Notes: generated by a model not told the origin, from the letters alone. Shown: positions 9,601 to 41,029, counted from the first letter of the stretch. The stretch: DNA of 64,000 nt from Trichosphaerium sp. ATCC 40318 (GCA_038496445.1 JALMLS010000030.1:124001-188000), one strand, 5' to 3'. Translations and numbers: made by a program.

Positions 9601-12600
9601 ACGCCCTTGTCTGTTATAGATTCACAATATGCTACATTTATGCTGAGCATTTGTGGTAAAATCTTTGATACTTCAAACAACATTGAATCTTAACAGAAAA
9701 GTTAAAACAAAGGTACTCATTCAAAACCGAAGTTTCTAACATTTTACCTGACATTGTAGGACATTCAGATAAATCCAGAGTTGTTGTATTTTTAAATAAT
9801 TCAGATAAACGAGAACTCATTAACTTGGAATGAAGACACATCTCAATAATCGACTTGAGAGCAGTTCTGTAAAAAAAAATTAGAAAAAAAAATCTAAGTT
9901 CGGCTTTAACAGTTTGTACGTACCCTTGCAGAGCAATAACACTTTTAAGTTGCTTATCAAGATAAGTTATATCAGATTTGAGTACCCTCTGAAAATATTT
10001 TGCAGCTTGTCCAACAAATCCTTAAGGACAGGGTCAGCTGAAACTTAATAGTAAATTATATACTAACCTTTGTGTTTAAGTTCCTCGTGGTAATGCAAGT
10101 CAGCGTAGTTATAATAACTCTTTGCTAGCTTGAATGTAATATATATATCCCTTGGATAATGTTTATGAAGAACTTGAAACATCTCTGCAGCAGCAAAGAA
10201 GTACTTTCTATTTGCTATAAAAAGGTCAACAAAAAACCAAAACGCAAAAAAAAAATCCAATTACTTTTAGCCTTCTTAAAGAGCTCATTAGCCCGTCTCT
10301 TTAATTTCTCAAGCTCACTGCTATCTTCTTTAATAAGTAGTTTATACTTTTGCGCAGCTAAAAAATAAAGAATCAGCAGAGTGTTTAATAGAATAAACTA
10401 AACACGTGCCTTCACGAAAGTACTTTTCAAAAGCATCACTCTCTTCATCTATAACACTTGCATAATAAATCAACGCATCACCTAGATGAACACATGATAA
10501 GAAAAATAGTGTACTTAACATGTACCACATACCCCATAATATAAGCAAATCACGTAACATCTTCTTAACCTCATCAATACGCTCATTCCGTAATGAGCTG
10601 ACATTAAGCGTTGTCTCATCTCTCATGTGAGCAATCGTAGTTTTATCACAACCATCTGTACTAGAACGTAACGGTACTGTATAATCAGACTGTTTCTAAA
10701 AAACAAGTCAACAAAATGAGTACAATGCTAAACATAAAGATTTAAACACGTGCCGGTGATATCAAAGAAGAGGTAGTAGAACAAGAAATGTCTTCATTTC
10801 CAGAATTTGATAAATGATCCAAATAACCTGATGGCCTTAAGGTTGTTGGGAGAGGCGCTATTGGAAGGCGTGCTATTTGAATAAGCAAGAGCGAAAGATG
10901 AAGCCATAAAGTATAAGAAAAGGGGCTTACGCTTAGTTCCAGGCATTGGTGGTGGGTGAGGGACATTGACATAGCCTAGTTCAGCAGGCGCAAGTGTAAC
11001 TTTTCTTGGAGATGGATCATCATGTGGATGAAGAAAAACGTTCTCATAACCAGGTACATTTGCCAATGTAGGAGAACTATTCTTACTATTCAAAGGAGAA
11101 CTAGTGTTGCTGACACCATTGTTATCTCCGTCCAAGTCTTTATAGCTGTCTATGACGATGTTAATCGTGTTCAAAATGATTTTGTATAAAAGTGTGTACT
11201 GTCACATTTGCGCATTTGAGGTGGTGTAGGCCAAGTTTCTGAGCCTCCAGTTGGAACAGGTGGTGGTACGGGTGGTGGTAACGGTGGCATAGTTTCCAGG
11301 GTCGCTTTTAGGGCTTTATGTGTGCTACTATTTACAGGCGGAGGTAGAACAGTGGCTGTTTCAAGTATTTTTTTGCCTTTCTTCTGGGTGGACTCTAAAG
11401 CCTTGTTTTAAAACTTCATAATTACTTCAACAACATACCTGTAGCATCACGTGTATTAAAAAAAGCTGATGCTTCGTCGTCAGAAAAAGAATCGTCAAGA
11501 TCAAGAGGTTCAGATAAAGACAAGTTAGAGTTTATAGTCCTTATATCTTCAACTTTCTTGTTGAATTTCCTTATATCTTTCAACATTGTCAACCGCGCGT
11601 TTTTGATTTCTGGTACACTTGTCATTGATTTCAGGTTTTCTTGTGATCCTTTATCGATAACTAAACGCTCATTAATTGATATAGGGCATAAAACAAAGGG
11701 AAAAATAAGTGAAAGATATGTACAAGAATCAGCTGTTTTATCTGCAACGCTTATAACAGAAAGAGCCTTGTAGTCATTGGGTTCAACACGTTGTATCTTT
11801 CTAACTTTTCCAGAGCGTTTACTAGTCTGTGTCATATTCTTCAAGTCTACAACATGAACCTAGAAGCTGTGAGACATATACTGTAAAATAAGTAAGGCTT
11901 GGTTACTTTGGTACTGAAAAAGTCGTGATCTAGCACAAGCTGTTCTTTGCTATTAAGATACGCCGTTTCAAGCATCGCTGCAGTAACATCATCATATTCC
12001 TCCCATTGACCATAGTTAACCCAACGCCAAACACCAGGACCTTCAGATATATCTTGAGACTTATCTAAACAACACATCAACAAAAAAAAACATACAACAT
12101 TCCACGTGGTTATGGATACGTACTTGGTACATGAGGTGACAATGATATATTATCCATGAAAGAGTTAGGTTTCTTTAAGTTTGCAGTATGATGTCTCCTA
12201 TAACAATACGGCATAAGTCAAACTATTCTTAACAGCGTAAACGTACACTTCTTGCAACATAACATTCCTTGGAATTTCTCTAAAGGTTGTTGGTGATTCA
12301 AGCTTTATGTTCTCAACTATTTCTGTTGGATTAACATCCCAAACACTATTTTCTAGTTCTCCTTCAACAAAATTGGAGAAAGAATGCTTTAGAGTATTTC
12401 TACTGTTATTCCTGACAACTTTTCCACTTGGTCCGCTATGATTACTCCGATTACCTTTTCGTAGTCTTCCAGTTATCAACTAGTAATGAAACTAAGTAAG
12501 AGAGCAGAGGTATGGAATGAGGAATCATACCTTGTTACTAATAATACGACCTTTAAATCTTTTTAAATTGGCATACAAACTCGCTGCTAGTGTATGAACA

Positions 12601-24138: not shown

Positions 24139-27100
24139 TCGGCTTACTGAGAAAATACAAACGAATTTACCATTCAATCAAGTATTATGTTACAGCAAAC
24201 AAGCGTTTTGAAGCTATAGTCGTAGCTCTACTGATGACAAGTCTTATGTACTTGCATCAAATTTATAACGAATAGTATCAACAACTCCACACTGTCACAA
24301 GCTTTTGAAAGTTGATCAGTGAGTAATTATACCACTTCTAAGACGAAGAGATATCTATGTGCAAGTTAATGCCTAACGCCTTCTTTAAATGATCTGTAAT
24401 CTTCTATTTCAAACACCAACGCCGACACCAGACCAAAAGCAGCAAGTCACAGCAAACACCCCCAAAAATATGTAAATAAGACTTTTTATACTACAATTGT
24501 ATACACATGGAGTCCCTCTCTGCACATTAACACTCTCGAGACAGTGAACTTTGTTTCATCTGACGCCTAATAACAAACAGTTGCGAATCTTCCTACTACT
24601 ATTACATATTAATCCTAACGTATTAACAATACAATGCAGTCCAATCGTAATAACAACAAACATATGAGAGTGTTTTCATTGAATAGCGCATCGGGTATTC
24701 ATCGGACAAACTTTAAGCATCACGTGACACACTTGTCAGTATTCAATGAATCAAATCCTCGAGACTTCTCGTCAAACCTTTCATTTAGAACATTCGTTAT
24801 ATATTTGTCGACACGTGATTTTACGTTGTACAAACAATATTCGGAGATGTAAACGCTCCACTAACCTCTTAAAAGTCAAAAAAAAAGAGACTTCAATACT
24901 ATTGGCGAGATGTAGTACTGCGGAGCGTATAGATGAACCTAATAATGTATTTGAGCCGAACGTTAAAATGTAAACCTATAATTAAACCGTTTCTAATTTA
25001 TGTAGAAGTAGGGTGTTCTTTCAGCGCCTTTTTTGTGTTTGAGATCAAAAATCCTCGTCAAATCACGCAAAAAAACGATCCGAGATTATGCGTGATGAAG
25101 TAGTGCAGATTCGTGCGACAAAGGTGCGGCGTAGTAAAGCAAGGTAGCTTTACAATATATGTTTCTTGCAGGTTGTTTGGGATGATACAATTAGGCCCGG
25201 AGCTCACACAATGATTCACATCAAGAATGTCAATCGTGGTCAAAACCACGAATAAATTAAACAAACGAACCAAACCAACAACAGCAACAAGTGAAACATG
25301 AATAGAAGTACAATCTTAGTTGTAATATGCACGCGTACGTATAATCAGAAGGCTTCTATATTGATTTTCTGCTGTTTTTTTCTTGTTATAATGTGGGAGT
25401 AACATAATTGTCTTTCTAGTTTTTGTAATGGCATTTGCCCAGTATGAACCTGAGATTTGTGATAGATGCTTGGACTGTAATATCACACCCTGCTTTAATG
25501 CAGGAGATGATTGCTATCAAAGGGTAATGGGTGGTGAGTGTTGGAGAATAGGAACCGACCATGTAGATAGAAACAGTACGTGCGGTTTTTTGTTTGTTTT
25601 TGAATTATATTAAATCAACATCACGTGGCTACGGTTTTGGTATTTTATAAGACTAAGTGCTTTATTTGTTGTTTCTGATACATTTATGCAAGTCGATATG
25701 GAAAGGGATTTATCATATCCTTGTATTTTTATCGAGCCGGGTGTTCAATTTTATGGCACCATTACTGGAACGAATGGGGATGACTGTCTCATCCTTGAAG
25801 AGGGTGCCGAGCTGTATTCACAAGTAGATCTAAAAGGAGGGAATGACTATGTATTAATGGCACCAGGTAGTTACCACGACGGAGACATGGTAATGGGTAC
25901 GTTACTTGCGTTGCTGCTTTAGTGTTTTTTGTGTTTTTGAACACAGAATATAACCTTTTGATACAGGAGGTGGTGATGATTGTCATATTGGTATAGTTTA
26001 TCAAACAGGTGATATAAATACAGGATCTGGAAATGATGCTATTTTTTCTTTTGGGCGTGCTTTAGGGTAAAGTATTTTTATTGTTCATCATAACCAAGTT
26101 GCTAATATTGTACCTTTAGGAATGAAGAATTCCGTATGGGAAGTGGTGATGATTGTTTGCTATTTAATATTGATCCTGGTCTCCTTGAACCATCTGGTAA
26201 GAAGAAAAGAGATGGAAGTATGACATTACGTGACTTGGGTGCTAGTACGTTTTCTTTCTTTTTTTTTTTTTTTTGGCGTTTTTCATGAAGAAACAAAATC
26301 ACTGTCTTCAATTAACGTTTGTTTTCTTTCTTCATGTACTAAGACACCTTTCCATAGTTGCTCAAGACGATTCCCCTATGGATAATTATTTCAGGATGAT
26401 GATCAAAGAAGGACTAAATTATCAACAACAAAACAGTAAACGAAATGAGGAACTAAGAATTAAAAATAATAATACCAAACCTGCTCATAAACGTTCCACT
26501 GAGGGAGGTACTGGCATTGGTGATGTTTTTCTTAATGCTGGAAATGATTGCGTACTATATACTGATATGGCCGTCTTTGGACAAACAAGAGGTATGCACA
26601 GACATATATTCTTAATTTTTTCTTATCATGTAAAAAAAAAACCTTTTGTGTTCTCTACAGTTCCATACATTCACATCATACATTTTTACCCTTAAAAAAA
26701 ACACTTTTTTTGAATAAGCAACCTAAAAAGCAAGGCGTTTCTGTGGTGGGGGTTAAAAAAAAGCGAAGAATTTGAAGTGTAACATTTGAAATCACTTTTT
26801 CAAAATACTCTCTCCAAAGTTTACTAGCCATATTCATTCTACTGTGTAATTATGAGTTAAGACTTTATTTAGCGGGAAGCGGAGATGATTGTGTTCAGGG
26901 ATATGATTTTGTATTGGGTGACAACATCATTGCTGGGTCAGGTGATGATGTTATAGATATTTTGGACTGGGGTATTATCTACAACGATAATTTACGTTTC
27001 CTTGGTGGTTTAGGAGATGATACTATTTTTGTTCGTATTGATAACTATCCGCCACCTACTCGTCGCCACGAGATTAACGGAGGAGGTGATACAGATTTTT

Positions 27101-27480
27101 GTTGCAGCAGATATTTCGCACCAACAACGGACCCAACAACAGCGCCAGTTAAGAGACAGGAAGGATATGGTGGTCCTCCTATGGCTGTTGATATCATAAG
27201 AGGATGTGAAGAGCTTTGTACTATGCCTACATCTACACCTACGCCTCCTTGATTCTAGCTTTTTTTTTGTTTTCTCTTTGACTTGATTTTTTACAGACTT
27301 GTTAGTTGTCAAACAAAAAAATCTGCAACATAGATAAAATAAAACGTTTTACATATTACAACCTGGATTCCAGTACTTGTTTTGTCATTTTTGTTTTTCT
27401 GTTCATTTTGCTTCAAGAGATTATGGTGTGCAATAACTAAGAAAAAACCGAGATTGTGTCATATCTTGTTTTTTTGCTTA
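24139..27480 (+). repeat. Left arm of ~3 kb inverted segmental duplication (partner 38076-41029)
   Basis: Near-identical reverse complement from TCGGCTTACT..GAGAAAATACAAACG to ..CCGAGATTGT..TATCTTGTTTT; left arm has two extra ~160-bp blocks (~25085-25245, ~26640-26800). Confidence 0.95.
25298..27252 (+). CDS. Secreted Cys-containing protein with RTX/hemolysin-type Ca-binding repeats, copy A
   Basis: Signal peptide MNRSTILVVICTLFVMAFA; GTNGDDCL, GGNDYV, GGGDDCH, GSGNDAI, GSGDDCL, AGNDCV, GSGDDCV, AGSGDDVI, GGLGDDTI, NGGGDTDFC; 7 exons. Confidence 0.8.
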
Positions 27481-27632
27481 TCTCTTACAGAGGTATTACT
27501 CCAAACAATTGTTTTGTACATTTTAATTTAATTTATTACAGAAAAAAAAAAGAGAATTGTAATCTTCTACATCGCGATAAAGACTTCTTTTCTACCAAGT
27601 TCCAGATCCAAAGAACAAAGGTTATTGTCTCT

Positions 27633-30600
27633 CTAGTGCTTAAACATCTGCGAAAGCTTAGACTTAGAAAGAGACCGTACACTCAATCGAACATCCTCTA
27701 GAGGTTGTTTTGTTGAGTACGTTACAATGTACGTTGGTAATATCTGTTCTTCCTAAAAAGAGCACGTGGTTAGAAAGGCTGACACAATAGTCATTCATTT
27801 CGTATTTATTTTTGGCTTTTTTGCCACGTGATCAAATAATAAAATCACGTAATAACAATTCCAACGAAAGAAAAAAGCAAAAAAAATTTACTAGTCTTTT
27901 TTTGATGTTTTTTTTTTCCTCTATGTTAAGGACTGTGAGTAGAGATATGTACCTGCGTAATAAATATGCCATCAAATGTTGGTACTTTCTTTATAGAATC
28001 TATAGGCACATGAACATTTCTCTTTTTATACAAAGGCAGATAATGTGCATCAAAGTCATTGATTTTAAGTTTATCTTCTTTTAATCTCCTTATATCTGCT
28101 TCAGTCATCGGAAGCAGCTAAAAAACGATGAGAGTGTATCTTTAAAAACTTGGATCATGATGATTACGTACGTTACTAACAGCTAAGAAACATAATAGTA
28201 GAATACCTTGGTTATCTAACCTAGCAGCATAATCTGCTTGAGGTGTAACATAAATACCACTACCATAATGAACTAAGAAACGTCAGTATTGTTTATCACG
28301 TACGCATTGCCATTAATGCTCTAATAATTTACCTGACTCAGAAACAGACAAACCAGCCGCTGCAATAAGAGGAATTTGGTCTTTCCTACAAAAGACAAAG
28401 AATCAGCACTGAAGACATCGAAATAAAAGAGCAACAAGAAGTTTGGTTTGTTGTTGAACTCAACATTAACTCTTTGTTCAAAGATATACGTACTTGACAG
28501 CATACCATACTGGTATTATAGTGACATTATTATGTGGTGCATATGTAAAATTTGAAAACCGTTTAAGTAACTTTGCACGTAGCTTTGCGCTACCTAAAGG
28601 TGATGCAGGAGGTGTTTTTTTATCTGAAACACGAATCGAAAGACGTTCAAGTTTTGTTTCGAAACTTTCTCTCAACTTATCATTACGTAAAGCCTAACAT
28701 ATTAAATGTTTAGTACATGCCAATCAAACAAAAAAAAAACTTTTTTCTGAAAAAGTCACGTGGTGGTGGAAGAGAGCAAAAAAAGTTGAACTTGCCTCGA
28801 TTTTTTCAATCGTAAAATTACGAGCGACAGCAATATCAGCAATGTGCTCATAGAAGATATCTTCGACAAGCTGACATTGCTCAACCACACTACTACTATT
28901 ATTACTACGCTTAATTTCAAGCGTATTATAATGCTCAGTCTTAACCCATCCTTTACGTTTGAGTATCTTTTTAGGGAAACGCCAAGGTGTTGGCATATTT
29001 CTATTTCTATCAACTTGCTTAGCTAATTGATTATCTATAAGTTTAGCTATTTCTTTATTGCCTGTCACGTGATATTAGTATATTGATATAATCATATTGT
29101 AAAGTACCTTTCTTTCTAGCATCATCAGAAGCTGTATCACCGAGTCTGTTACGAGAAATGGCGATATTGTTCTCAAGTAAGAATTTACAAACTTTTAAAT
29201 GTCCACCCCAAGCAGCTCCTTAATAAACTCATGTAAGTTTACATGTATTATAAAAATATCTTGTCGTACCATGCAAAGCAGTTGATCCGTGAATTTGTAC
29301 ATGATTAATATTTGCTCCAAGTTTAAGTAATTGTTTAACAATTAACATTTGTCCATGTCTTGCAGCACTATAAAGAATGGAACTTCCAAAATGATTTGGA
29401 TCACCAGCATCAATAGGACCACCTACACATGACCATAAACATTTATAATAAGGAACGCTATCACTCTTACCTTGATTTATCCAAGACATAGTCATAGATA
29501 CATTACCCGTCATGGCAGCTTTCCATGGATTGATGCCTTAACAAGGTTATTAAGTAGGGCTTTTTTTGGTTTATGCGCTTACCGGTGCTCTTTTCTACGT
29601 CTTCTGCAGATAGAAATGACTCTTCTACTCTTCCTGTATGATCTATACTTCTCTTACGAGAAGGTAATGGTACTCTACATCCTACAGACCTAGAAGATCC
29701 TCTAACTGATTTACCATGCCATTCTTTGTTCATATTTTTTTTAAGTTTAGATACAATCTTCTTTGCTGTAGGTCGACAAAAAGGATCACGTTGCCAGCAC
29801 TTTTTAATAAGTTTGACATAAAAATCAGGCCAAAGTCTTTCAGGTATTGATGGCCTTAGATCCTGGTATATTATTGCATCAACAAGCTTTAACTTGTCCC
29901 AGGTTTCTTTATATGCCATACCCTTTTCTTCATCCCAAAGAATTCCACTCTTACCTAAAATACTCGGTTAGTATTCCGCACAATATACACAATATACTGT
30001 ACCTCTTGACTTATATGAATCGTAATCAGACTTCGATACTTGTTGTCTATTCACATACTCCTCAAATTCCGAAAAAGGGTCTTGGCTGAAAAACTCAAGT
30101 TAGACGAACACAAGAAAGGTTTGTTGAATAGTGTACCATGTCATTAGCTCCCACAATAAAATACCAAAGCTATACATATCGCTTCGTTCATCGTAATGTG
30201 CTGCTGTAGGATCAATCACTTCAGGAGCCAAATAAGTGAATGACAGAAGCAACTCGCAAAGTGCAGGTCTCGTTTGAGCAGCTAAGAAAATTTTAAGAAA
30301 AAAGTCCTGGACGCTAAAACAATCTTCGTAATACCTAATCCAAAGTCTCCAATGATTGCATTTCTTTCAGCAGATGGATCAAGAGAAGTCACCTACACAA
30401 ATATTAGAAACAAGAAGAAAAACGTCCAGAAAAGTAGTCATACAAAAATATTTGCTGGTTTCAAGTCTCTGTGTGCTATAGGAGGTCGTAGTGTATGTAG
30501 ATGGTTCAAACCACGTGCAACATTAAGTGCAATCTTAATTTGAAGTTCCCAAGATAAATTACCCTTTAAAGAGAAGAAAAGTAAGCTTAAACCTGTGCTA

Positions 30601-33506
30601 TTATTTTTTTCCTACTTTTTTCAAATGATGATCGAGTGATTTATCAGGCATGTACTCTATGACCATCCTCAGTGGATTCTTGGTAACACCAATTAGTGAG
30701 ATAAGGTTAGGATGTTCCATAAAACTATAAACATATGAGTATAATATATAAAAAAGAAAAGGAGCACCTCGTCAAGTACGACTCATGTTGGAAAGCTAAA
30801 AATTTGTTCAAAAATTCCTCGTTCTCATCACGTTGATGTAACTCCTTTAGTGCAACAGAATTTTCCCCGATTTTACCCTTATAAACTTTACCAAATCCTC
30901 CTAATCGAGGAAATCAATAAGTGTAATTAAGCAACTGTTTAACAAACCTTGTCCAAGCACCTCCATAATTTCTACATTATCAATTGCTTTAGTATAAGCA
31001 AAGTCCATGTCTGGCGCTACTTCTATAAGACTCACAGCGCCTATGGTACACTCTTAGAATCGAACACGACTAGTAATTTTTACCTTGTGCAGCAGCGAAA
31101 GTATATTCTCCACGCATCACTGCACCAAGACAGACACTGAAAGGAACAAACTAGAAAAAAATGTTATAAAAAGTAATAGGTGACGGATTGTTTGCAATTA
31201 CCTGGTTTGCTACAAGTACTTCTCTTGAAACACGATTACTCAAGTGTCCGTAATGAAGCGTTATTAGCTGTTCAATACCATGAGCAATCTCAGTGAATAA
31301 GTCTATATCGCCAGTTTCACCAAGACCACTTAATAAAAAAATGAGGTTAAGCTATATTTTTTGTCTTTTAAGGCCTAAAGAACAACCCACTTACGAATCA
31401 CGTTTTCTTATAACATCAATCCATAAATTACGTTTCTTTTTAATATTACCCGTCGTGTATGATATTATAGCATGTTGCCTATTTAAAGAGAATAAACAAG
31501 AAATCTGGTACCGAAAAAAAAACTTTTTTTTTCCGTACTGGTTACTTATCTCAGCTTCCATATAATTTGCAAAAACTTGGGGTGCATTAACACCAGGTAT
31601 ATTATGTACTTTTGCTAAAATCCTTTCAAAAAAAGCGAAAGGGTATGCCGAAAACTCATATCTTCGGCCCCATCTATAATACTTTTTCATACTTACTTCC
31701 TATTTTAGGCAAAAGTAATTAATTAACCGATTCCTTTTTTTTTTGGACGTCACTTACTTCGTGTTCTTTGAATACATCCGTAAAGTCATTTCTATGCGGT
31801 AAAAATGTTGGTACAAGATACGATACTATCGAACCATTAACACGTGGTAGCGGGTATATAAGTTCGAATCTATCAAGTAACAGCAACATAGGTAGTTGTA
31901 AGGACTCTGGAACCCGTACACGGACTTCCTCCTAGCAAGAAACTATTAATTTCCGTTCATTTTTTTCGATCAAAGAAATGACTTACAAAAATGTCATCTG
32001 TCAAAGCTTGACCATTACTAACAATCCTCGAAATCGGTTTTATAAAATTAGTAACCAATCTAAAAATATAAAATCAACTGAAGATAACCATAGGTGAGAG
32101 CGAAGTAACAAAATAAATACCTTGGATCAACAATAACAATATTCTTCAACCGAATATCTGATTTAAAATGAAGAATAATGCCATGATCATTAAGAAAATC
32201 CGCTGCCTAGTAAGGTACCATAAGCGATTAGTGAAATGGTACAAGCTAATAACGTACTAGTTCAACTTCATCCTCAGCAAAATTAAGTTGATTCGTTAGA
32301 GTCTCAAATTGTTCATAAGTCATATAAAGAGTAGTTTTCCTCATCTCTATGACTTCTTCCATTAATCTTTTAAAGCGAACTGGCTTGCTCCCTCTTAAAC
32401 GTCTTTTGGAAACAACCTACCAAACACAAAAACGTGATCAGCACGCATACACACACAGAGGCCAAAAAACACCAAAGAAAAAAAACCGTACTGTGTTTAG
32501 TTTGTCTTTAAACTCATGTAAAATTTGAACTGCATCTCTTTTTTTAGTGGCACAATTCAAAACAACACAGTCAGTTATTGACTGTACTTTGAAATAAGAT
32601 TTAAGAGTATCACATGATTCAATTGCATCCTTTCTATTGACCTATACAATCACATAAGAACGTCAGAACACAACAACCAACCTTTCCAAAAAAAAAGAAA
32701 AAAAAAGCATTATTCTACTGTAAATCAATAACAAATAACCCTCGAATGGACTTTTGTCGCTGTAGAACGCGTTGGCAAGGTTTTCACGCAAAAATTCGTT
32801 GATTTTTTGTTACTTTCGAAATCTGTTTTCAGACGTTATGTACCTCATCGAAATGAGTCCCTACTAAGAATATAGGCGCATATTTTTGTCTAGAGCGTAT
32901 TGATTTTACCCAATAGTCCAAATGATGCGGGTTTGGGTCACGTAAGCTAAAAACGATAGTATAAATGCTGACGCTGCTTAGAACCTAAAGAGAGTATTAA
33001 AGAAAGAAGAAAAAAATAAAATGTCAAATACGGACTATTTAAACAAAAAGGTTACGGATTGCTACAATTATCCGTTTATGGCGAAGTAGTATGTATTTTA
33101 TTACAAAGATAGCGTTTAAACGTACGAATTGGTGCGTAGAGTAAAGTAAATCTGCTGAAAAGTCCCACACTTCCCATTCAACCTTGTTGGAGCGTCAATG
33201 GTATTTGTAAGCGTCATGGCGTACATTAGGTCCTGTAACGGTTTGAACGTGAATGCCATCGTTTTTAGGAGAAGAGGACGTTTCGTACGCGCTACCAGGC
33301 ACTTCTGTTGCAAAGAAAGAAGCAAACTGAGATTTTCCTAAAAGTTTTTTTTAACTTGTTGCTCAAACATGCTATGCAACACGCGTTTATACGCTACAGT
33401 GCTATATGATGGGATTTTTGAGTGCATAAGGCGAGAACAACGCACCAACTTGCCGGTGACCCAATATTATCAGGTTTACTCTGTTAATAGTAGCGTTTTC
33501 CTCCAT
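27633..33506 (-). CDS. Roco-family protein: Roc GTPase, COR, protein kinase, ankyrin repeats, degenerate PARP-like ADP-ribosyltransferase domain
   Basis: Roc: LIILGHRQVGKS, VWDFSA..YSTHQF, IFLVGTHFD; COR: FLNDHGIILHF..IVDPR, YLVPTFLP, YPFAFFERIL; kinase: LGQGGFGKVY, VALKE, HRDLKPAN, GDFGL, YLAPE, SDMYSFG; ANK: LYSAARHG, GSTALHGAAWGGH; ART: YGSGIYVTPQADYA..QILPTYIVTY. Confidence 0.85.
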
Positions 33507-33786: not shown

Positions 33787-34277
33787 ATGGAAGACAAGCT
33801 GAAAGAGTCTGATAAGTATAAGAATGATCTATTGAGGGATCAACAAGCTGTTACTGATAAGTTATTTGCCGAAGCTGTTGCTCCAGATAATATGCGTAAC
33901 GACTCATTTTTTAAATACGCCATACAAAGGCCGCCATTGTTCTTGGGTACGCCGTTAAAGTGTATTAAGAGTAATAATACTTGTCTAGGCATTGGTTTAG
34001 CGCTTACTGCGTTTGGTTGGTCCACATCGCTTTTTTTTAGAGGTTTACCTGCGTCAACTCCAACAATACTATGGATGCGCGCGTCTGGCATGTACGGATT
34101 AATTCTGTAATTTACGAAGTGTCATTAAAATCATATAGTACGCTCGTTCTAGGCTCATCGTTTATATATTCGGTAATAGAGAGCGATGAGTATAAAAGAG
34201 AGGTAAAAATTGCTCTTGATGAAAGAGATAGACTACGAGCAATAGAAAAGCAAAAAACACAAACTACTCGGCTGTAA
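33787..34277 (+). CDS. Small membrane protein, possibly HIG1/Rcf1-like
   Basis: 3 exons; FFKYAIQRPPLFLGIGLALTAFG..FFRG..WMRASGTLVLG resembles the HIG1 two-helix pattern. Confidence 0.4.
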
Positions 34278-34664
34278 CAGAGCAACTATGTCAAAAAATG
34301 AAAAAAAACCAAAAAACTGTCTAAATTCTTGCCAACCGATTTTGGCATCTGTACGCTATTGTATTTAATAAACAAACATCACTAGTTAGTCTACCTTATT
34401 TACTGATAACTTGGAGAGGACTTGGGACACCTCTCATTCCAGAACAAACGCCCAGAACTGAACAATGCAAAAAAATCTTCACAGCTGTTGCAAAAGAGTA
34501 TACCTAATACATATAATGAATATTGCAAGGGTCTGTGTTATGTTAACAGTATCTATCTCTTGATTGGCAGAATTCCACGTGTGGCTTAAGATAGCCCAGT
34601 TTCTGGTCTTTTTTAATTTAGACGCCGACTTCATTTTCCATACAACGAGTATTAATAATAAAGC

Positions 34665-35230
34665 ATGTCCCAGCTTCCTGTGGTAGTATTACCTCAATGT
34701 AAAGTTTCAAAACCAGAATCACGTGTTACGCGATCTCATACATCACGTGGGTTTACTAAAAAGAAAAGGTGACTCCGCTAGTTGTTTTGTTCCGAAAACT
34801 GTTAATTTGTTAAGCATAGGCGACACAGACGACGTCCTACATACCCGCCACCACGTTCGAGGGATAGTAGGCACATCAGATCCCTTGCGAACAAATATAA
34901 CGATGATCACGAGACAGAAGCAACAGAACCTACATTTAGCTTACGTAACGTGTATGATGCGCTTCCTGACCCAAATTCGGCTGTGATACCACGTGATATT
35001 AGACAATCAAGACCATTGAACCCAAAAGCAAAAAGGAGGCATACTCATCACCGCACTAGGTCTCACAGCTATAGTATAGCACTGGAACCATGTTTAGGCT
35101 CAGACAGTCCAGTCTTGAGGTAACAACTTGTTTTGTTGTTTAGCTGGTGCGACTCAATACTAACTACTATTCCAGGCGCTCTGTTTATTTAAAGTACAAC
35201 AGTTCAAAGAAGGAAGAAGGACATCAGTAG
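34665..35230 (+). CDS. Small basic low-complexity hypothetical protein
   Basis: Three exons join in frame with GT-AG introns: MSQLPVV..TKKKR/RHRRRPTYPPPRSR..SPVLR/RSVYLKY..EGHQ*. Confidence 0.5.
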
Positions 35231-35467
35231 GCCAATTTTGCATCGGTTTTTTCATTGTACACTACGTTGATTTCTAAGTGCATAGCGTTGCACAAGGATT
35301 GCCCAAATACACCATAATATGCCTATATTAGTTCTGTTATTCTCTAGCTATATGTTTATAAAATGCAATTCACTAATGAAGTTTCAAAACGCCGATACTG
35401 GACTGCGAATGAAAAACATCATAAAAATGTTGAGCAGAAAAGAAAAAGGATTGACTTTTCAGTTATT

Positions 35468-37487
35468 ATGAGCAATCTTTACGTCAACAGGCCTTCATGG
35501 GCTAATATTCCGCTATCTAACTTACAACAAACACATACAAAAGGTATTCTAGGCAGACAGCGTTTTACAATCCGCCATAACTTTTCCTTTTGCTAAAATG
35601 GACTAGAACAGCTTTCAGATGCTAATATACTACCTATTACATACAATGACCTTATTCATGACGTATTAACGGCCGAACAAGTACAACATTTCAAAGACGA
35701 CGGTTACCTTGTATGACTTAACTCGATTGTCGCTATTAAAACCGTCTTAACTTCTTTCGTAGGTTGTTCATGATGCGCTCAATAACGATCAGTGTAATGT
35801 AGTTATAGATGCATTAATAGATGCACTAAACAAAACAATGCTGAAAGAAGAGGAGTTTAAATTAAGTCGAGAAGATTACTCAACATTTGACATTTTGACA
35901 CATCCAAAACTTCGCAAAGAAAAGCTCAAAAACCCTGATGCGGTGTACTCTACAAAGAGAAAAGGGAAATGGAAGACACTAGAAATAGGTACTTTGACAT
36001 ACTCAGTAAAATCTAACCCACGTGATTGATAACAGGCACAGCTGGAATGACAAATTTCTTCTTTTTGCCAAGTGCAATGGTTTTAAAGTACAACAAAACG
36101 ACATACAACACCTTGCGCCAGCTTTATGGTGCTACTGATGTATGTGTATCTAAATTATCTCATATCTTGTTTAATCATTTTTAATAGTTGCATATGGCAA
36201 TGGAACGTCTTGGTGTAAAGGCCAATGGAGACAATAAAATGAGACTGCACATGGATGTAAACTTATTTTCTGTATGTTTTTTTTTCCTTTGGACTTTTCG
36301 ACTTTCTTCTTTGTTGGTTAATTCTCTTGTTCAGGATTTTGATCCGTTAACACGTATTCAATCTCTTTTGACTCTTGAAATTGATAAGGACTCTCCACCA
36401 GTAAGTTCTGGTACTCTTGCAGTAATTCCTGGATTCCAACACTATATTGGAGTGGCACGTGCTTTGATGCACCCTAAAACAGGTACAATAAATCAAAGAA
36501 ACATTTTCTTGTACTAAACAAGCCTAAGGATACAAGGAATTACGAGTACCTTATCCAACATGTGATTTTTTTTGCCTTGACAGAAAGGATGGTAAAAAAA
36601 ACATAAATTGGGAAAAGCAACATTTACCTGTACTTAATGAGTATATTAAAATGTGGACAATGATTCAACATCAACCTCAAGATGTACCCGAGGTATGTAC
36701 ATTATGATCTCTAATCAAGCTTAAAACCTAACTTGTAACAGGCAAGGAAAGCAAGTGAAATGCAGTCTATATCAACCTTTGATAGTAAATCTTTGTGGGA
36801 ACATGCTGTTAATGCACAGCGTTCTAACCCTGGTGTAACAGTACCCAAGGAGCATAGGCTTTTACGCGTTTTACCAATAAGAGCTCAAAAAGGTGATTTG
36901 GTACTATGGTCTTGGGCTCTACCTCACAGAAATCAAATCAAGAAAAGGACGAAAGGAAAAAAAATAAGGTACAAACTTTGCGCATCTATATTATGTCTAA
37001 TTACATGTTTCAGTCCACCACGTATTTGTGCTTATATGCAATATAATAAAGTTACTGGTCCCCACGGTAGTAGATATGAAGATGTTGAATATAGGAAGAG
37101 ATTATTCAAGCAAGTATTTGGCACTGTAGGAAAAAGATATCCCGAAAATGACTTGGAAAGAAGATGGGTTATGAACGAACTTTCTGTAGAAAAATACTCT
37201 CCTCTGTTCACTCAGGTACTACTTCAATAAAGGAAAATACGTGAGTATTATATCTATGGATAGTAACACTAAAATAGGATGGATTTTATGCTCATCCAAG
37301 GACAGATAACCTACTTCTCAAAGCGCTTTTGGGTTTTGATCCAAAAACTTTTGAAGATTTTACTTGGGATGATTATCGTTCTCTCAGTGTTACACCAGTT
37401 TCCACCAAATCAAAGCGAGAAGCCCCAGGAAAGCCATTGGTAGAACATATATCAAAAAAAAGGCGAACAGAAAAACCGACCAACTAA
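35468..37487 (+). CDS. PhyH-family Fe(II)/2-oxoglutarate dioxygenase
   Basis: LTAEQVQHFKDDGYLVVHDAL start; HxD (LHMD), IQSLLTL, SGTLAVIPGF, AQKGDLVLWSWALPHRN, PRICAYM. Confidence 0.8.
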
Positions 37488-37527
37488 AATACTGAAAATG
37501 TCAACAATAACTAATAAGATTATTTTT

Positions 37528-38050
37528 GAACAAATGACCTGTCTTGTTCTTTGAAGGGCACTAAATTAATTCCATGAATTGATTTGCAACTTCATAGTTA
37601 GATCTGTTAATGGCTCGGTCTCAGACCTCTCTTAAGCTTAGTTGAGTCAACAGGTGTCTGGCCAAACTGAATTGGTCCTAAAAAAAAACACGTGCAACTA
37701 ATATGACAGTTATACACGAGCAACGTATTTCAACCAACTTGACCTTTATATCCACAATGGCTGTACACGCGTTTTCTCCATTACAGACGTTTGGGTAAGA
37801 CTTGGTATGACTCACATAAATCAACTACAAACGCCGACAACGTGTATACAGAACATGGCGAGCAGCAATCACCCACATCCCACCGAAAAATTTCCTTTTC
37901 AATTTGATTTAAAATACTGTAAAACTTTCTTTTATTTCCAAGTGTTTCTTGTATAATATAACAAATGCTTGGCGCTGCGCTAGAGCCACAAGATATTTTG
38001 TCTTTCTCCCAACATCGTCTAAAGTTGATTCCTTGGTTAGTTGATAGAAG
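37528..38050 (-). pseudogene. Orphan spliced exons (3' remnant of an unidentified gene) abutting the duplication arm
   Basis: GT-AG-bounded segments reading ESTLDDVGRKTKYLVALAQRQAF / EIFRWDVGDCCSPCS / SYPNVCNGENACTAIVDIK; no start codon before the repeat boundary. Confidence 0.3.
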
Positions 38051-38075
38051 AGTAGTATTAGTGGTATAACTCTTA

Positions 38076-41029
38076 TTAGCAACAAAACAAGATATTTACA
38101 ATCTCGGTTTTTTCTTACTTATTGCGCACCGTAATCTCTGATCAGTCTGCTAGATATGAAGCAAAATGAACAGAAAAACAAAAATGACAAAACAAGTACT
38201 GTAATCCAGGTTGTAATATGTAAAACGTTTTATTTTATCTATGGGTTGCAGATTTTTTTGTTTGACAACGAGTCATGTAAAAATCAAGTCAAAGAGAAAA
38301 CAAAAAAAGCTAGAATCAAGGAGGCGTAGGTGTAGATGTAGGCATAGTACAAAGCTCTTCACATCCTCTTATGATATCAACAGCCATAGGAGGACCACCA
38401 TATCCTTCCTGTCTCTTAACTGGCGCTGTTGTTGGGTCCGTTATTGGTGCGAAATATCTGCTGCAACAAAAATCTGTATCACCTCCTCCGTTAATCTCGT
38501 GGCGACGAGTAGGTGAAGGATCCTCATCAATACGAACAAAAATAGTATCATCTCCTAAACCACCAAGGAAACGTAAATTATCGTTGTAGACAATACCCCA
38601 GTCCAAAATATCTACAACATCATCACCTGACCCAGCAATGATATTGTCACCCAATGCAAAATCATATCCCTGAACACAATCATCTCCGCTTCCCGCTAAA
38701 TAAAGTCTTTAACTCATTATTGCATTGTAGAATGAATATGGCCCTAGTAAACTTTGGAGAGAGTATTTTGCGCGGTTTTTTAACATGATAAGAAAAAATT
38801 AAGAATATATGTCTGTGCATACCTCTTGTTTGTCCAAAGACGGCCATATCAGTATATACTACACAATCATTTCCAGCATTAAGAAAAACATCACCAATGC
38901 CAGTACCTCCCTCAGTGGAACGTTTATGAGCAGGTTTGGTATTATTATTTTTAATTCTTAGTTCCTCATTTCGTTTACTGTTTTGTTGTTGATAATTTAG
39001 TCCTTCTTTAATCATCATCCTGAAATAATTATCCATAGGGGAATCGTCTTGAGCAACTATGGAAAGGTGTCTTAGTACATGAAGAAAAGAAAATAAACGT
39101 TAATTGAAGACAGTAATTTTTGTTTCTGTTCATGAAAATCGCCCAAAAAAAAAAAAAGATCACGTACTAGCACCCAAGTCACGTAATGTCATACTTCCAT
39201 CTCTTTTCTTCTTATCAGATTGTCCAAAGAGCTCAAAATCAATATTAAATAGCAAACAATCATCACCACTTCCCATACGGAATTCTTCATTCCTAAAGGT
39301 ACAATATTAGCAACTTGGTTATGATGAACAATAAAAATACTTACCCTGTAATACGCTCAAAAGAAAAAATAGCATCATTTCCAGATCCTGTATTTATATC
39401 ACCTGTTTGATGATTAAAACCAATATGACAATCATCACCACCTCCTGTATCAAAAGGTTATATTCTGTGTTCAAAAACACAAAAAACACTAAAGCAGCAA
39501 CGCAAGTAACGTACCCATTACCATATCTCCTTCGTGGTAACTACCTGGAACCATTACTACATTGTCATTCCCTCCTTTTAGATCTACTTGTGAATACAGC
39601 TCGGCACCAAATTCAAGGATGAGACAGTCATCCCCATTCGTTCCAGTAATGGTGCCATAAAATTGAACACCCGGCTCGATGAGAATACAAGGATATGATA
39701 AATCCCTTTCCATATCGACTTGCATAAATGTATCAGAAACAACAAATAAAGCACTTAGTCTTATAAAATACCAAACCGTAGCCACATGATGTTGATGTAA
39801 AAAAAAAAAAAAAAACACAAAAAACTGCACGTACTGTTTCTATCTACATGGTCGGTTCCTATTATCCAACACTCACCAGCTGTTACCCTTTGAAAGCAAT
39901 CCTCTCCTGTTTCAAAGCAGGATGTGATATCACAGTCCAAGCATCTATCACAAATCTCAGGTTCATACTGGGCAAATGCCATTACAAAAACTAGAAAGAC
40001 AATTATGTTACTTCCACATTATAACAAGAAAAAAACAGCAGAAAATTAATATAGAAGCCTTCTGATTATACGTACGCGTGCATAGCACAACTAAGATTGT
40101 ACTTCTATTCATATTTCACTTGTTGCTGTTGTTGGTTTGGTTCGTTTGTTTAATTTATTCGGGTGATCTCGGATGGTTTTTTTGCGTGATTTGACGAGGA
40201 TTTTTTGAATCTCAAACACAAAAAAGGCGCTGAAAGAACACCCTACTTCTACATAAATTAGAAACGGTTTAACACAAGGTTTACATTTTAACGTTCGGCT
40301 CAAATACATTATTAGGTTCATCTATACGCTCCGCAGTACTACATCTCGCCAATAGTATTGAAGTCTCTTTTTTTTTTGACTTTTAAGAGGTTAGTGGAGC
40401 GTTTACATCTCCGAATATTGTTTGTACAACGTAAAATCACGTGTCGACAATATATAACGAATGTTCTAAATGAAAGGTTTGACGAGAAGTCTCGAGGATT
40501 TGATTCATTGAATACTGACAAGTGTGTCACGTGATGCTTAAAGTTTGTCCGATGAATACCCGATGCGCTATTCAATGAAAACACTCTCTGTATTTCACAT
40601 GTTTGTTGTTATTAGGCTTCCAGATGAAACAAAGTCCACTGAATAGTCTGGAGAGCATTAATGTGTATACAATACAATGTCTTATTTACATATTTTTGGG
40701 GTGTTTGCTGTTTGACTTGCTGCTTTTGCTGGTCTAGTGTTGGCGTTGGTGTTTGAAATAAAAGATTACAAATCATTTAACGAAGACTAAAGCATTACCT
40801 TGCGCACACAGATATCTCTTGGTCTTAGAAGTGGTATAATTACTCACTAATCAACTTTTAACACTTGTGACAATGTGTGGAGTTGTTGATACTATTCGTT
40901 ATAAATTTGATGCAAGTACATAAGACTTGGCATCAGTAGAGCTACGACTGTAGCTTCAAAATGCTTGTTTGCTGTAACATAATATGTGATTGAATGGTAA
41001 ATTCGTTTGTATTTTCTCAGAGTAAGCCG
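38076..41029 (-). repeat. Right arm of inverted segmental duplication
   Basis: Reverse complement of 24139-27480. Confidence 0.95.
38316..40112 (-). CDS. Secreted RTX-repeat protein, copy B
   Basis: Same exon structure as 25298-27252 with reading frame intact. Confidence 0.8.

Follow-up and report, generated by a model that had tools for sequence, protein, structure and literature searches.

Gene model and domain architecture

We analysed a stretch of 64,000 nucleotides (nt) from the genome of the marine amoeba Trichosphaerium sp. ATCC 40318 (GCA_038496445.1, JALMLS010000030.1:124001-188000); this whole stretch is referred to here as the window, and all coordinates are positions within it. 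Between 27.6 and 33.5 kb its minus strand carries one intact gene for a Roco GTPase-kinase that lacks leucine-rich repeats (LRRs). The encoded domains follow the order Roc, COR, tyrosine kinase-like (TKL) kinase, about 3.5 ankyrin (Ank) repeats, and, at the C terminus, a region of some 215 amino acids (aa) with PARP-like features (Table 1).

No long open reading frame (ORF) was found at 27.6-33.5 kb in an ORF scan of the window, and the coding pieces were first spotted as stop-free minus-strand segments and then read in three frames. A numeric check of the resulting chain of 30 exons found zero internal stops, consistent phases, and a frame that closes exactly at the TAG, and a corresponding check of the splice sites gave 28 introns of the GT-AG type and one of the GC-AG type, with lengths of 42-202 nt (intron 2 having only 42 nt). 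The GC-AG case is intron 25 (28694-28795, minus strand), for which the best model places the donor at 28795; an in-phase GT donor at 28759, 36 nt downstream, would provide an alternative end of exon 25 and add 12 aa. An open stretch within intron 4 (QKINEF...) was considered as a Roc exon and rejected, as no intron joins its frame. The 202-nt intron 4 restores proper spacing between the G4 and G5 motifs of Roc. At the other end of the gene, the last ankyrin repeat (GDTASDDARKK/G/NKEIAKLIDNQL) crosses the junction of exons 24 and 25 and exon 25 also opens the C-terminal region, which is therefore not transcribed separately unless exon 25 is split.

The first strand and P-loop of Roc (NLIILGHRQVGKS) start at about residue 9-11, and the protein does not have the LRRs N-terminal to Roc that define the LRRK type. 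The frame upstream of the ATG at 33506 is open for just 14 codons, a plus-strand ORF opening with ATG begins 280 nt upstream of the Roco ATG, and the minus-strand segments over 4.5 kb upstream gave no Pfam match and no LRR exons. An earlier reading made from the sequence alone (hereafter the sequence-only reading) had proposed a Roc domain from about residue 9 without N-terminal LRRs, and ankyrin repeats plus a further C-terminal region after the kinase. The former is borne out by the sequence and the empty upstream Pfam scan, and the latter by exon-wise Pfam matches and the spliced frames.

Table 1. Features of the Roco gene in the window (positions in the 64,000-nt stretch)
Feature	Position	Strand	Details
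Whole coding region	27633-33506	-	30 exons, ~1,266 aa; ATG at 33506, TAG at 27635-27633
Exons 1-10	33506-33446, 33337-33225, 33182-33126, 32984-32844, 32641-32492, 32416-32258, 32206-32121, 32059-31987, 31931-31758, 31699-31539	-	
Exons 11-20	31478-31395, 31328-31202, 31150-31084, 31040-30948, 30900-30768, 30724-30616, 30563-30444, 30392-30335, 30281-30137, 30085-30003	-	
Exons 21-30	29954-29583, 29536-29471, 29422-29270, 29218-29108, 29061-28796, 28693-28494, 28385-28333, 28272-28172, 28117-27953, 27752-27633	-	
Roc GTPase domain (exons 1-5)	32492-33506	-	Pfam Roc on exon 4, E=0.0023
G3/switch II motif DFSA	33153-33164	-	DxxG with Gly to Ala; following Gln absent
COR domain (exons 6-13)	31084-32416	-	Pfam COR-A on exon 7, E=2.1e-4
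TKL-type protein kinase (exons 14-21)	29735-31040	-	Pfam Pkinase/PK_Tyr_Ser-Thr on exons 16, 17, 19, 21
Ankyrin repeats, ~3.5 (exons 22-25)	28994-29536	-	Pfam Ank families on exons 22-24
Exon 25 (Ea)	28796-29061	-	End of ankyrin cap and start of tail (PTPW...EHYNTLEI...FTIEKIE)
Exon 26 (Eb)	28494-28693	-	ALRNDKL...IIPVWYAV
Exon 27 (Ec)	28333-28385	-	KDQIPLIAAAGLSVSES; position of the PARP 'I..AGF' helix
Exon 28 (Ed)	28172-28272	-	HYGSGIYVTPQADYAARLDNQGILLLCFLAVSN; putative PARP donor-site segment, both tyrosines retained
Exon 29 (Ee)	27953-28117	-	LLPMTEAD...AHYLPL...PTFDGIFITQ
Exon 30 (Ef)	27633-27752	-	EEQILPTYIVTY, 27-aa tail, TAG; putative last beta-strand of the PARP fold
Two poly(A)-signal-like hexamers	27522-27537	-	~100 nt downstream of the stop

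Roc-COR core, kinase and ankyrin repeats

In the similarity searches the spliced model was queried exon by exon, and local scoring also treated the exons separately. Membership of the Roco family follows from the presence of a Roc domain with COR directly behind it. Within Roc, the P-loop GHRQVGKS straddles the junction of exons 1 and 2, G4 reads GTHFD (THFD, of the Roc type THxD), and a G5-like motif reads NCAT. The same genome contains a classical Roco paralogue, L053 (G000:C107:6500-16499, minus strand), with the layout Ank-LRR-Roc-COR-kinase and a canonical G3 motif (DFGGQ); a WD40-like region downstream of it was recognized by eye in one stop-free segment. BLASTP aligned four parts of our gene with this paralogue in colinear order, namely exon 3 (E=1e-4), exon 4 (E=2e-10), the end of COR-A (E=6e-4), and COR-B (E=2e-6). 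In the exon 3 alignment DFSA-D is placed on DFGGQ, which confirms the previously proposed replacement of DFxG by DFSA in G3. Switch I, compared by eye only, reads KNDGI here and STDGI in L053 (Thr to Asn). The protein hence departs from the canonical switch motifs of a working GTPase cycle (the Gly of DxxG and the Thr of switch I), while its family membership is unaffected.

All examined motifs of the active-looking kinase (GQGGFGKV, VALK, HRDLKPAN, DFG, and APE) are kept, and the ankyrin repeats were detected by the Pfam families Ank, Ank_2, Ank_3, and Ank_4 (E about 2e-5).

PARP-like signal in the C-terminal region

An Ank-PARP family is present in the genome in at least 25 copies (L033-L052; contigs C310, C270, C294, C64, C94, and others) and accounts for many of the 91 genomic matches to PF00644. 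Its members consist of ankyrin repeats, a conserved linker, a PARP domain with an intact H-Y-E triad, a Lys-rich tail, and a coiled coil. P0229 (MMETSP0405), a natural transcript product of the family, matches Pfam PARP with 38 bits (E=1.3e-9) and also confirms the splice junctions of the family, in which two subgroups (VTEKP and VIEKPGD types) were observed.

The strongest similarity to PARP domains was found in exon 28, which BLASTP aligned with the PARP domain of P0229 (E=5e-6), onto YYGQGIYFT..YAC.YD. Against a profile built on P0229 columns the exon scored 10.3-12.5 bits and ranked first among about 2,800 segments translated from the window in six frames. In a colinear test fixed beforehand, the expected exons were scored against four consecutive blocks of the family profile and ranked among 2,797 segments; they ranked 1, 44, 229, and 512 (Fisher p=7e-5), with exon 27 at rank 44 (p about 0.016) and exon 29 statistically weak (p about 0.08). 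When two N-terminal blocks were added, whose expected exons ranked 1,125 and 1,488, the recalculated p was about 4e-4. Support independent of the Ank-PARP family was obtained with hhalign and an alignment of other PARP subfamilies, in which YGxGLYFS..NDYA was matched by exon 28 (P=0.0024) and QVLPSYLIVY, the terminal strand, by exon 30 (P=0.0062), i.e., the correct PARP segments in the correct order; exon 29 had no hhalign match to this alignment. Exon 30 was also the top match of the window to a broad profile of 76 PARP sequences (6.2 bits), and its score against the corresponding Ank-PARP family block was not significant. Nearly all of the statistical signal comes from exon 28, which encodes 33 aa, and the last exon matches more weakly.

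Additional similarities to the family were recognized by eye along the tail. PLIAAAGLSVS resembles SIVKAGFGTVS and ILLLCFLAVSNLLPMTEAD resembles TLVLSLVTPGNVYPVTEKP. Exon 29 is colinear with PVTEKP...SHYTLV...DELVVAQ and includes AHYLPLYKKR opposite SHYTLVDKKG, and DGIFITQ/EEQILPTYIVTY corresponds to DELVVAQ/DVQAVARYIIKV, with an intron (slash) at nearly the same place. None of these by-eye matches is significant alone. All strings on which the sequence-only reading relied were found in spliced frames, i.e., DFSA, WYA (28507-28499), YGSGIY..DYA (28267-28226), FDGIF (27976-27962), and QILPTY (27746-27729). The ADP-ribosyltransferase (ART) identity which that reading gave to the tail was upheld in part: exons 28 and 30 fall on PARP segments, while the N-terminal half and the Pfam PARP searches show nothing. 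Judged from these alignments, the tail is probably a diverged PARP-type fold, for which we regard the signal as real yet narrow.

Catalytic positions

By colinearity with P0229, assigned by eye, the catalytic His position of PARPs corresponds to Tyr 28504-28502 in exon 26, and the catalytic Glu position to Gly 27970-27968 in exon 29. The middle triad position is Tyr 28252-28250 in exon 28, the sole triad residue inside the statistically supported alignment. The H-Y-E triad would then read Y-Y-G, which is neither H-Y-E nor H-Y-hydrophobic. Ala would likewise take the place of the Gly that follows the His, and Gln that of the Ser located three residues ahead of the second Tyr. The degeneration of catalytic positions (His to Tyr, Gly to Ala, and Glu to Gly) therefore holds as it had been described if the tail is PARP-like, in which case the domain is probably catalytically inactive.

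We consider it more likely than not that the gene encodes an LRR-less Roco kinase ending in ankyrin repeats and a strongly diverged, catalytically dead PARP-type fold, whose nearest detectable relative is the PARP domain of the Ank-PARP family. The Ank and pseudo-PARP module might have been recruited from that family or share a common ancestry with it.

Genome context

The layout of this gene is unique in the Trichosphaerium genome, as judged from paralogue searches and a comparison of genome-wide COR-A, Roc, and PARP matches. The latter were never adjacent to each other, and eight PARP loci had no Roc or COR upstream. The whole-genome search detected no paralogue of exons 26 and 29, and L022, an exon of the WWE-PARP type from this genome, gave no match as the query of a word search.

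A 2.2-kb inverted duplication (25250-27481 and 38075-40254; copies 92-94% identical) flanks a segment of about 10.6 kb, which contains the Roco gene and, at 33787-38000, the gene(s) of the plus strand. Two adjacent exons at 11788-12032 (minus strand) match the WWE profile with 23.7 and 22.8 bits. The WWE-domain gene which the sequence-only reading had placed about 15 kb away indeed lies about 15.6 kb from the 3' end of the Roco gene; the genome contains 44 WWE matches, of which this is one, and there is no sign of linkage.

Other PARP genes of the genome include single-exon genes (L012-L015, on contigs C20, C102, C1, and C28) in which the HGT motif is followed by a Cys-rich insertion (CN..C..CNIC) and whose closest named relatives are from brown algae (Ectocarpus) and a haptophyte (Emiliania) with 37-49% identity. 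For one single-exon PARP gene, an MMETSP transcript product shows 100% identity, with 99.9% identity between its transcript contig and the genome. In several genome scans, contig pairs (C107/C414, C126/C587, C214/C516, C28/C340, and C15/C311) have identical match scores and lengths, which suggests duplicated contigs in the assembly, either haplotigs or recent segmental duplications. The paper describing the 70.87-Mb draft genome of Trichosphaerium sp. mentions neither Roco nor LRRK nor PARP (PMC10521059). The amoebal origin assumed in the sequence-only reading is correct.

Alternative explanations

Several results weigh against an LRR-less Roco kinase with a dead PARP-type tail. None of the tail exons matched Pfam PARP even at E<=10, whether searched as stop-free pieces or as exact exons, and none of the 91 matches of the whole-genome PF00644 scan lies within the Roco gene. 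Exons 25-26, the N-terminal half of the tail, stayed at noise level against PARP profiles, and exons 29 and 30 gave no BLASTP alignment with P0229. An off-frame segment in intron 7 (QGIYFVTSL; 32077-32145, minus strand) reached 11.1 bits against the donor-site block by chance, over which the margin of exon 28 (12.5 bits) is small. Considering that the hypothesis was drawn from the same motifs, the apparent significance is inflated. For the Roc domain, exon 2 gave no BLASTP alignment with L053, so that the switch I change is seen by eye only. Finally, no transcript was found among the sequences searched, which leaves expression and splice junctions as predictions. The 11.1-bit chance match also serves as a calibration of the trust to be placed in short-motif scores.

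Alternatively, the tail may not be an ART fold at all but an unrelated, lineage-specific or partly disordered region in which YGxGIY..YA and QxLPxY occur by chance, and the protein would then simply be a Roco kinase that lacks LRRs and ends in ankyrin repeats and a tail of no known family. The Pfam results and the noise level of the N-terminal half speak for this possibility, as does the chance match, which spans 10 residues in the same window. Moreover, the PDB sequence search returned nothing for exon 28, and the ESM Atlas look-alike search with exon 25 was uninformative. A PDB search with P0229 also returned nothing, and a small local PARP profile gave about 0 bits. However, with two different PARP profiles, two separate exons were placed correctly on PARP segments and in the proper order, a p of about 1e-4 was obtained in the combined colinear test, and ankyrin repeats precede PARP as they do in the family of the same genome. 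Because the Ank-PARP family itself is so diverged from Pfam (38 bits), a pseudo-enzyme derived from it would be expected to evade exon-wise detection. We thus regard an unrelated tail as unlikely, though deserving of serious consideration.

Less probable still, in our view, is that the gene is a recent rearrangement chimera, unexpressed or functionless, which is intact merely through its youth. Such an origin could agree with the inverted duplication that bounds the segment and with the degenerate motifs in two of the three enzyme-like modules. It could also agree with the searches for relatives and transcripts. A library search with the longest exon (exon 21) found neither an orthologue nor the protein itself, although the Trichosphaerium MMETSP transcriptome is part of the library; the best match (39% identity over the kinase C-lobe) was to multi-kinase proteins of Tritrichomonas and a chytrid. 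Scans of metagenome and viral contigs with exons 25 and 29 revealed no transcript and no intron-free relative, and neither an orthologue nor a paralogue was found. On the other hand, the 30 exons keep one frame free of stops and are bounded by canonical splice sites, and the kinase motifs are all intact. The divergence of the tail from the Ank-PARP family far exceeds that among the family's own members, which suggests age rather than recency. Absence from the transcriptome of one culture is weak evidence.

The sequence-only reading had proposed that the degenerate ART still binds NAD+ or ADP-ribose and signals to the GTPase-kinase, possibly in defence. This appears very unlikely to us, and nothing in the analysis supports such sensing or a defence role. 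In its favour, exon 28 retains the two tyrosines which in PARPs stack on NAD+. In addition, PARP, WWE, and Roco genes are abundant in the genome, so that ADP-ribose signalling has clearly been expanded in this amoeba. However, NAD+ is contacted in PARP1 by the His, the adjacent Gly, and the Ser three positions ahead of the second Tyr, and these positions read Tyr, Ala, and Gln here. PARP13, which has the same His to Tyr change, is not known to bind NAD+. If the tail is PARP-like, the Y-Y-G reading of the triad and the replacement of the Gly and the nicotinamide-anchoring Ser, viewed against the PARP1 contacts and the analogy with PARP13, would predict no catalysis and probably no NAD+ binding.

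An immune sensor resembling nucleotide-binding LRR receptors (NLRs) is the most speculative and least probable reading: the Ank and dead-PARP tail would act as an 'integrated decoy' mimicking the abundant Ank-PARP enzymes, and a pathogen factor (for example from giant viruses trafficking genes with Trichosphaerium) that binds or modifies the decoy might cause the Roc-COR scaffold to free the kinase, which, if true, would make it the Roco counterpart of the integrated decoys of plant NLRs.

Proposed function and significance

Returning to an LRR-less Roco kinase with a dead PARP-type tail, the module that occupies the place of WD40 would most likely serve in targeting the kinase or in partner binding and not as an enzyme, and its partners are perhaps those of the Ank-PARP family. 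With an intact P-loop, G4, and G5, the Roc domain would probably still bind guanine nucleotide. A normal GTP-driven switch does not seem possible with DFSA in G3, the lost switch II Gln, and the Asn in switch I. The Roc-COR unit would therefore be mainly a scaffold or dimerisation device, and the kinase would be the only catalytic output of the protein.

Roco proteins, including LRRK2, are studied for the control of a kinase by a GTPase in one polypeptide. The gene described here would represent a natural variant with three departures, i.e., no LRRs, replacement of the switch glycine in Roc, and an ankyrin plus PARP-like module instead of WD40. It could provide a useful comparison for determining what in the Roco core is required to control the kinase, and for how pseudo-enzymes come to be recruited as targeting modules. 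In Trichosphaerium, ADP-ribosylation and Roco genes have undergone a large lineage-specific expansion, to which this gene is a further contribution. Its value is limited in that it is a single gene from a single species, with unconfirmed expression and a putative PARP fold.

Comparison with known systems

The sequence-only reading knew of no Roco protein with an ART domain, and the literature searched likewise contained no Roco-PARP or Roco-ART fusion; a review of Roco proteins names no ART or PARP domain (PMC6337361). The closest parallels in architecture are LRRK1 and LRRK2 of animals and Roco4 and other Roco kinases of Dictyostelium, which have in common with our gene the order of Roc, COR, and TKL kinase and an interaction module after the kinase; G4 of LRRK1, LRRK2, and Roco4 is likewise of the Roc type THxD. 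In comparison with these three proteins, nothing precedes Roc in the Trichosphaerium protein, G3 is DFSA instead of DFxG, and ankyrin repeats and a PARP-like region stand after the kinase in place of WD40. As the genome also holds the classical L053, the Roco-PARP-like gene represents a departure within the lineage.

DAPK1 is another Roco protein without LRRs that unites a kinase, ankyrin repeats, and Roc-COR (PMC6337361). However, its domains are arranged in the order kinase, Ank, Roc, COR, and death domain, in contrast to Roc, COR, kinase, Ank, and PARP-like region here, and its kinase is of the calcium/calmodulin-dependent (CaMK) type, whereas the Pfam matches of our gene are of the TKL type.

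With regard to the tail, PARP13/ZAP (triad Y-Y-V) and PARP9 (Q-Y-T) are both catalytically inactive, and their domain functions as a non-enzymatic module. As in the putative fold described here, His and Glu are replaced and the Tyr is kept. In these proteins the domain is accompanied by zinc fingers plus WWE or by macrodomains but not by a Roco kinase, and no sequence relationship to our tail closer than that of the PARP family in general was found. Tankyrases are comparable in having ankyrin repeats N-terminal to the PARP catalytic domain; they differ in being active enzymes (H-Y-E) that carry a SAM domain and ankyrin repeats in long clusters. The best match remains the Ank-PARP family of the same genome, with which the gene shares the succession of ankyrin repeats and PARP, the exon 28 similarity to the donor-site segment, and by-eye colinearity up to the last strand. 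The family differs in that it keeps H-Y-E (MVHGT, GIYFT, and DELVV), separates Ank from PARP by a linker of about 250 aa, has a Lys-rich tail and a coiled coil, and contains no Roc, COR, or kinase, and most intron positions are not common to it and the Roco gene.

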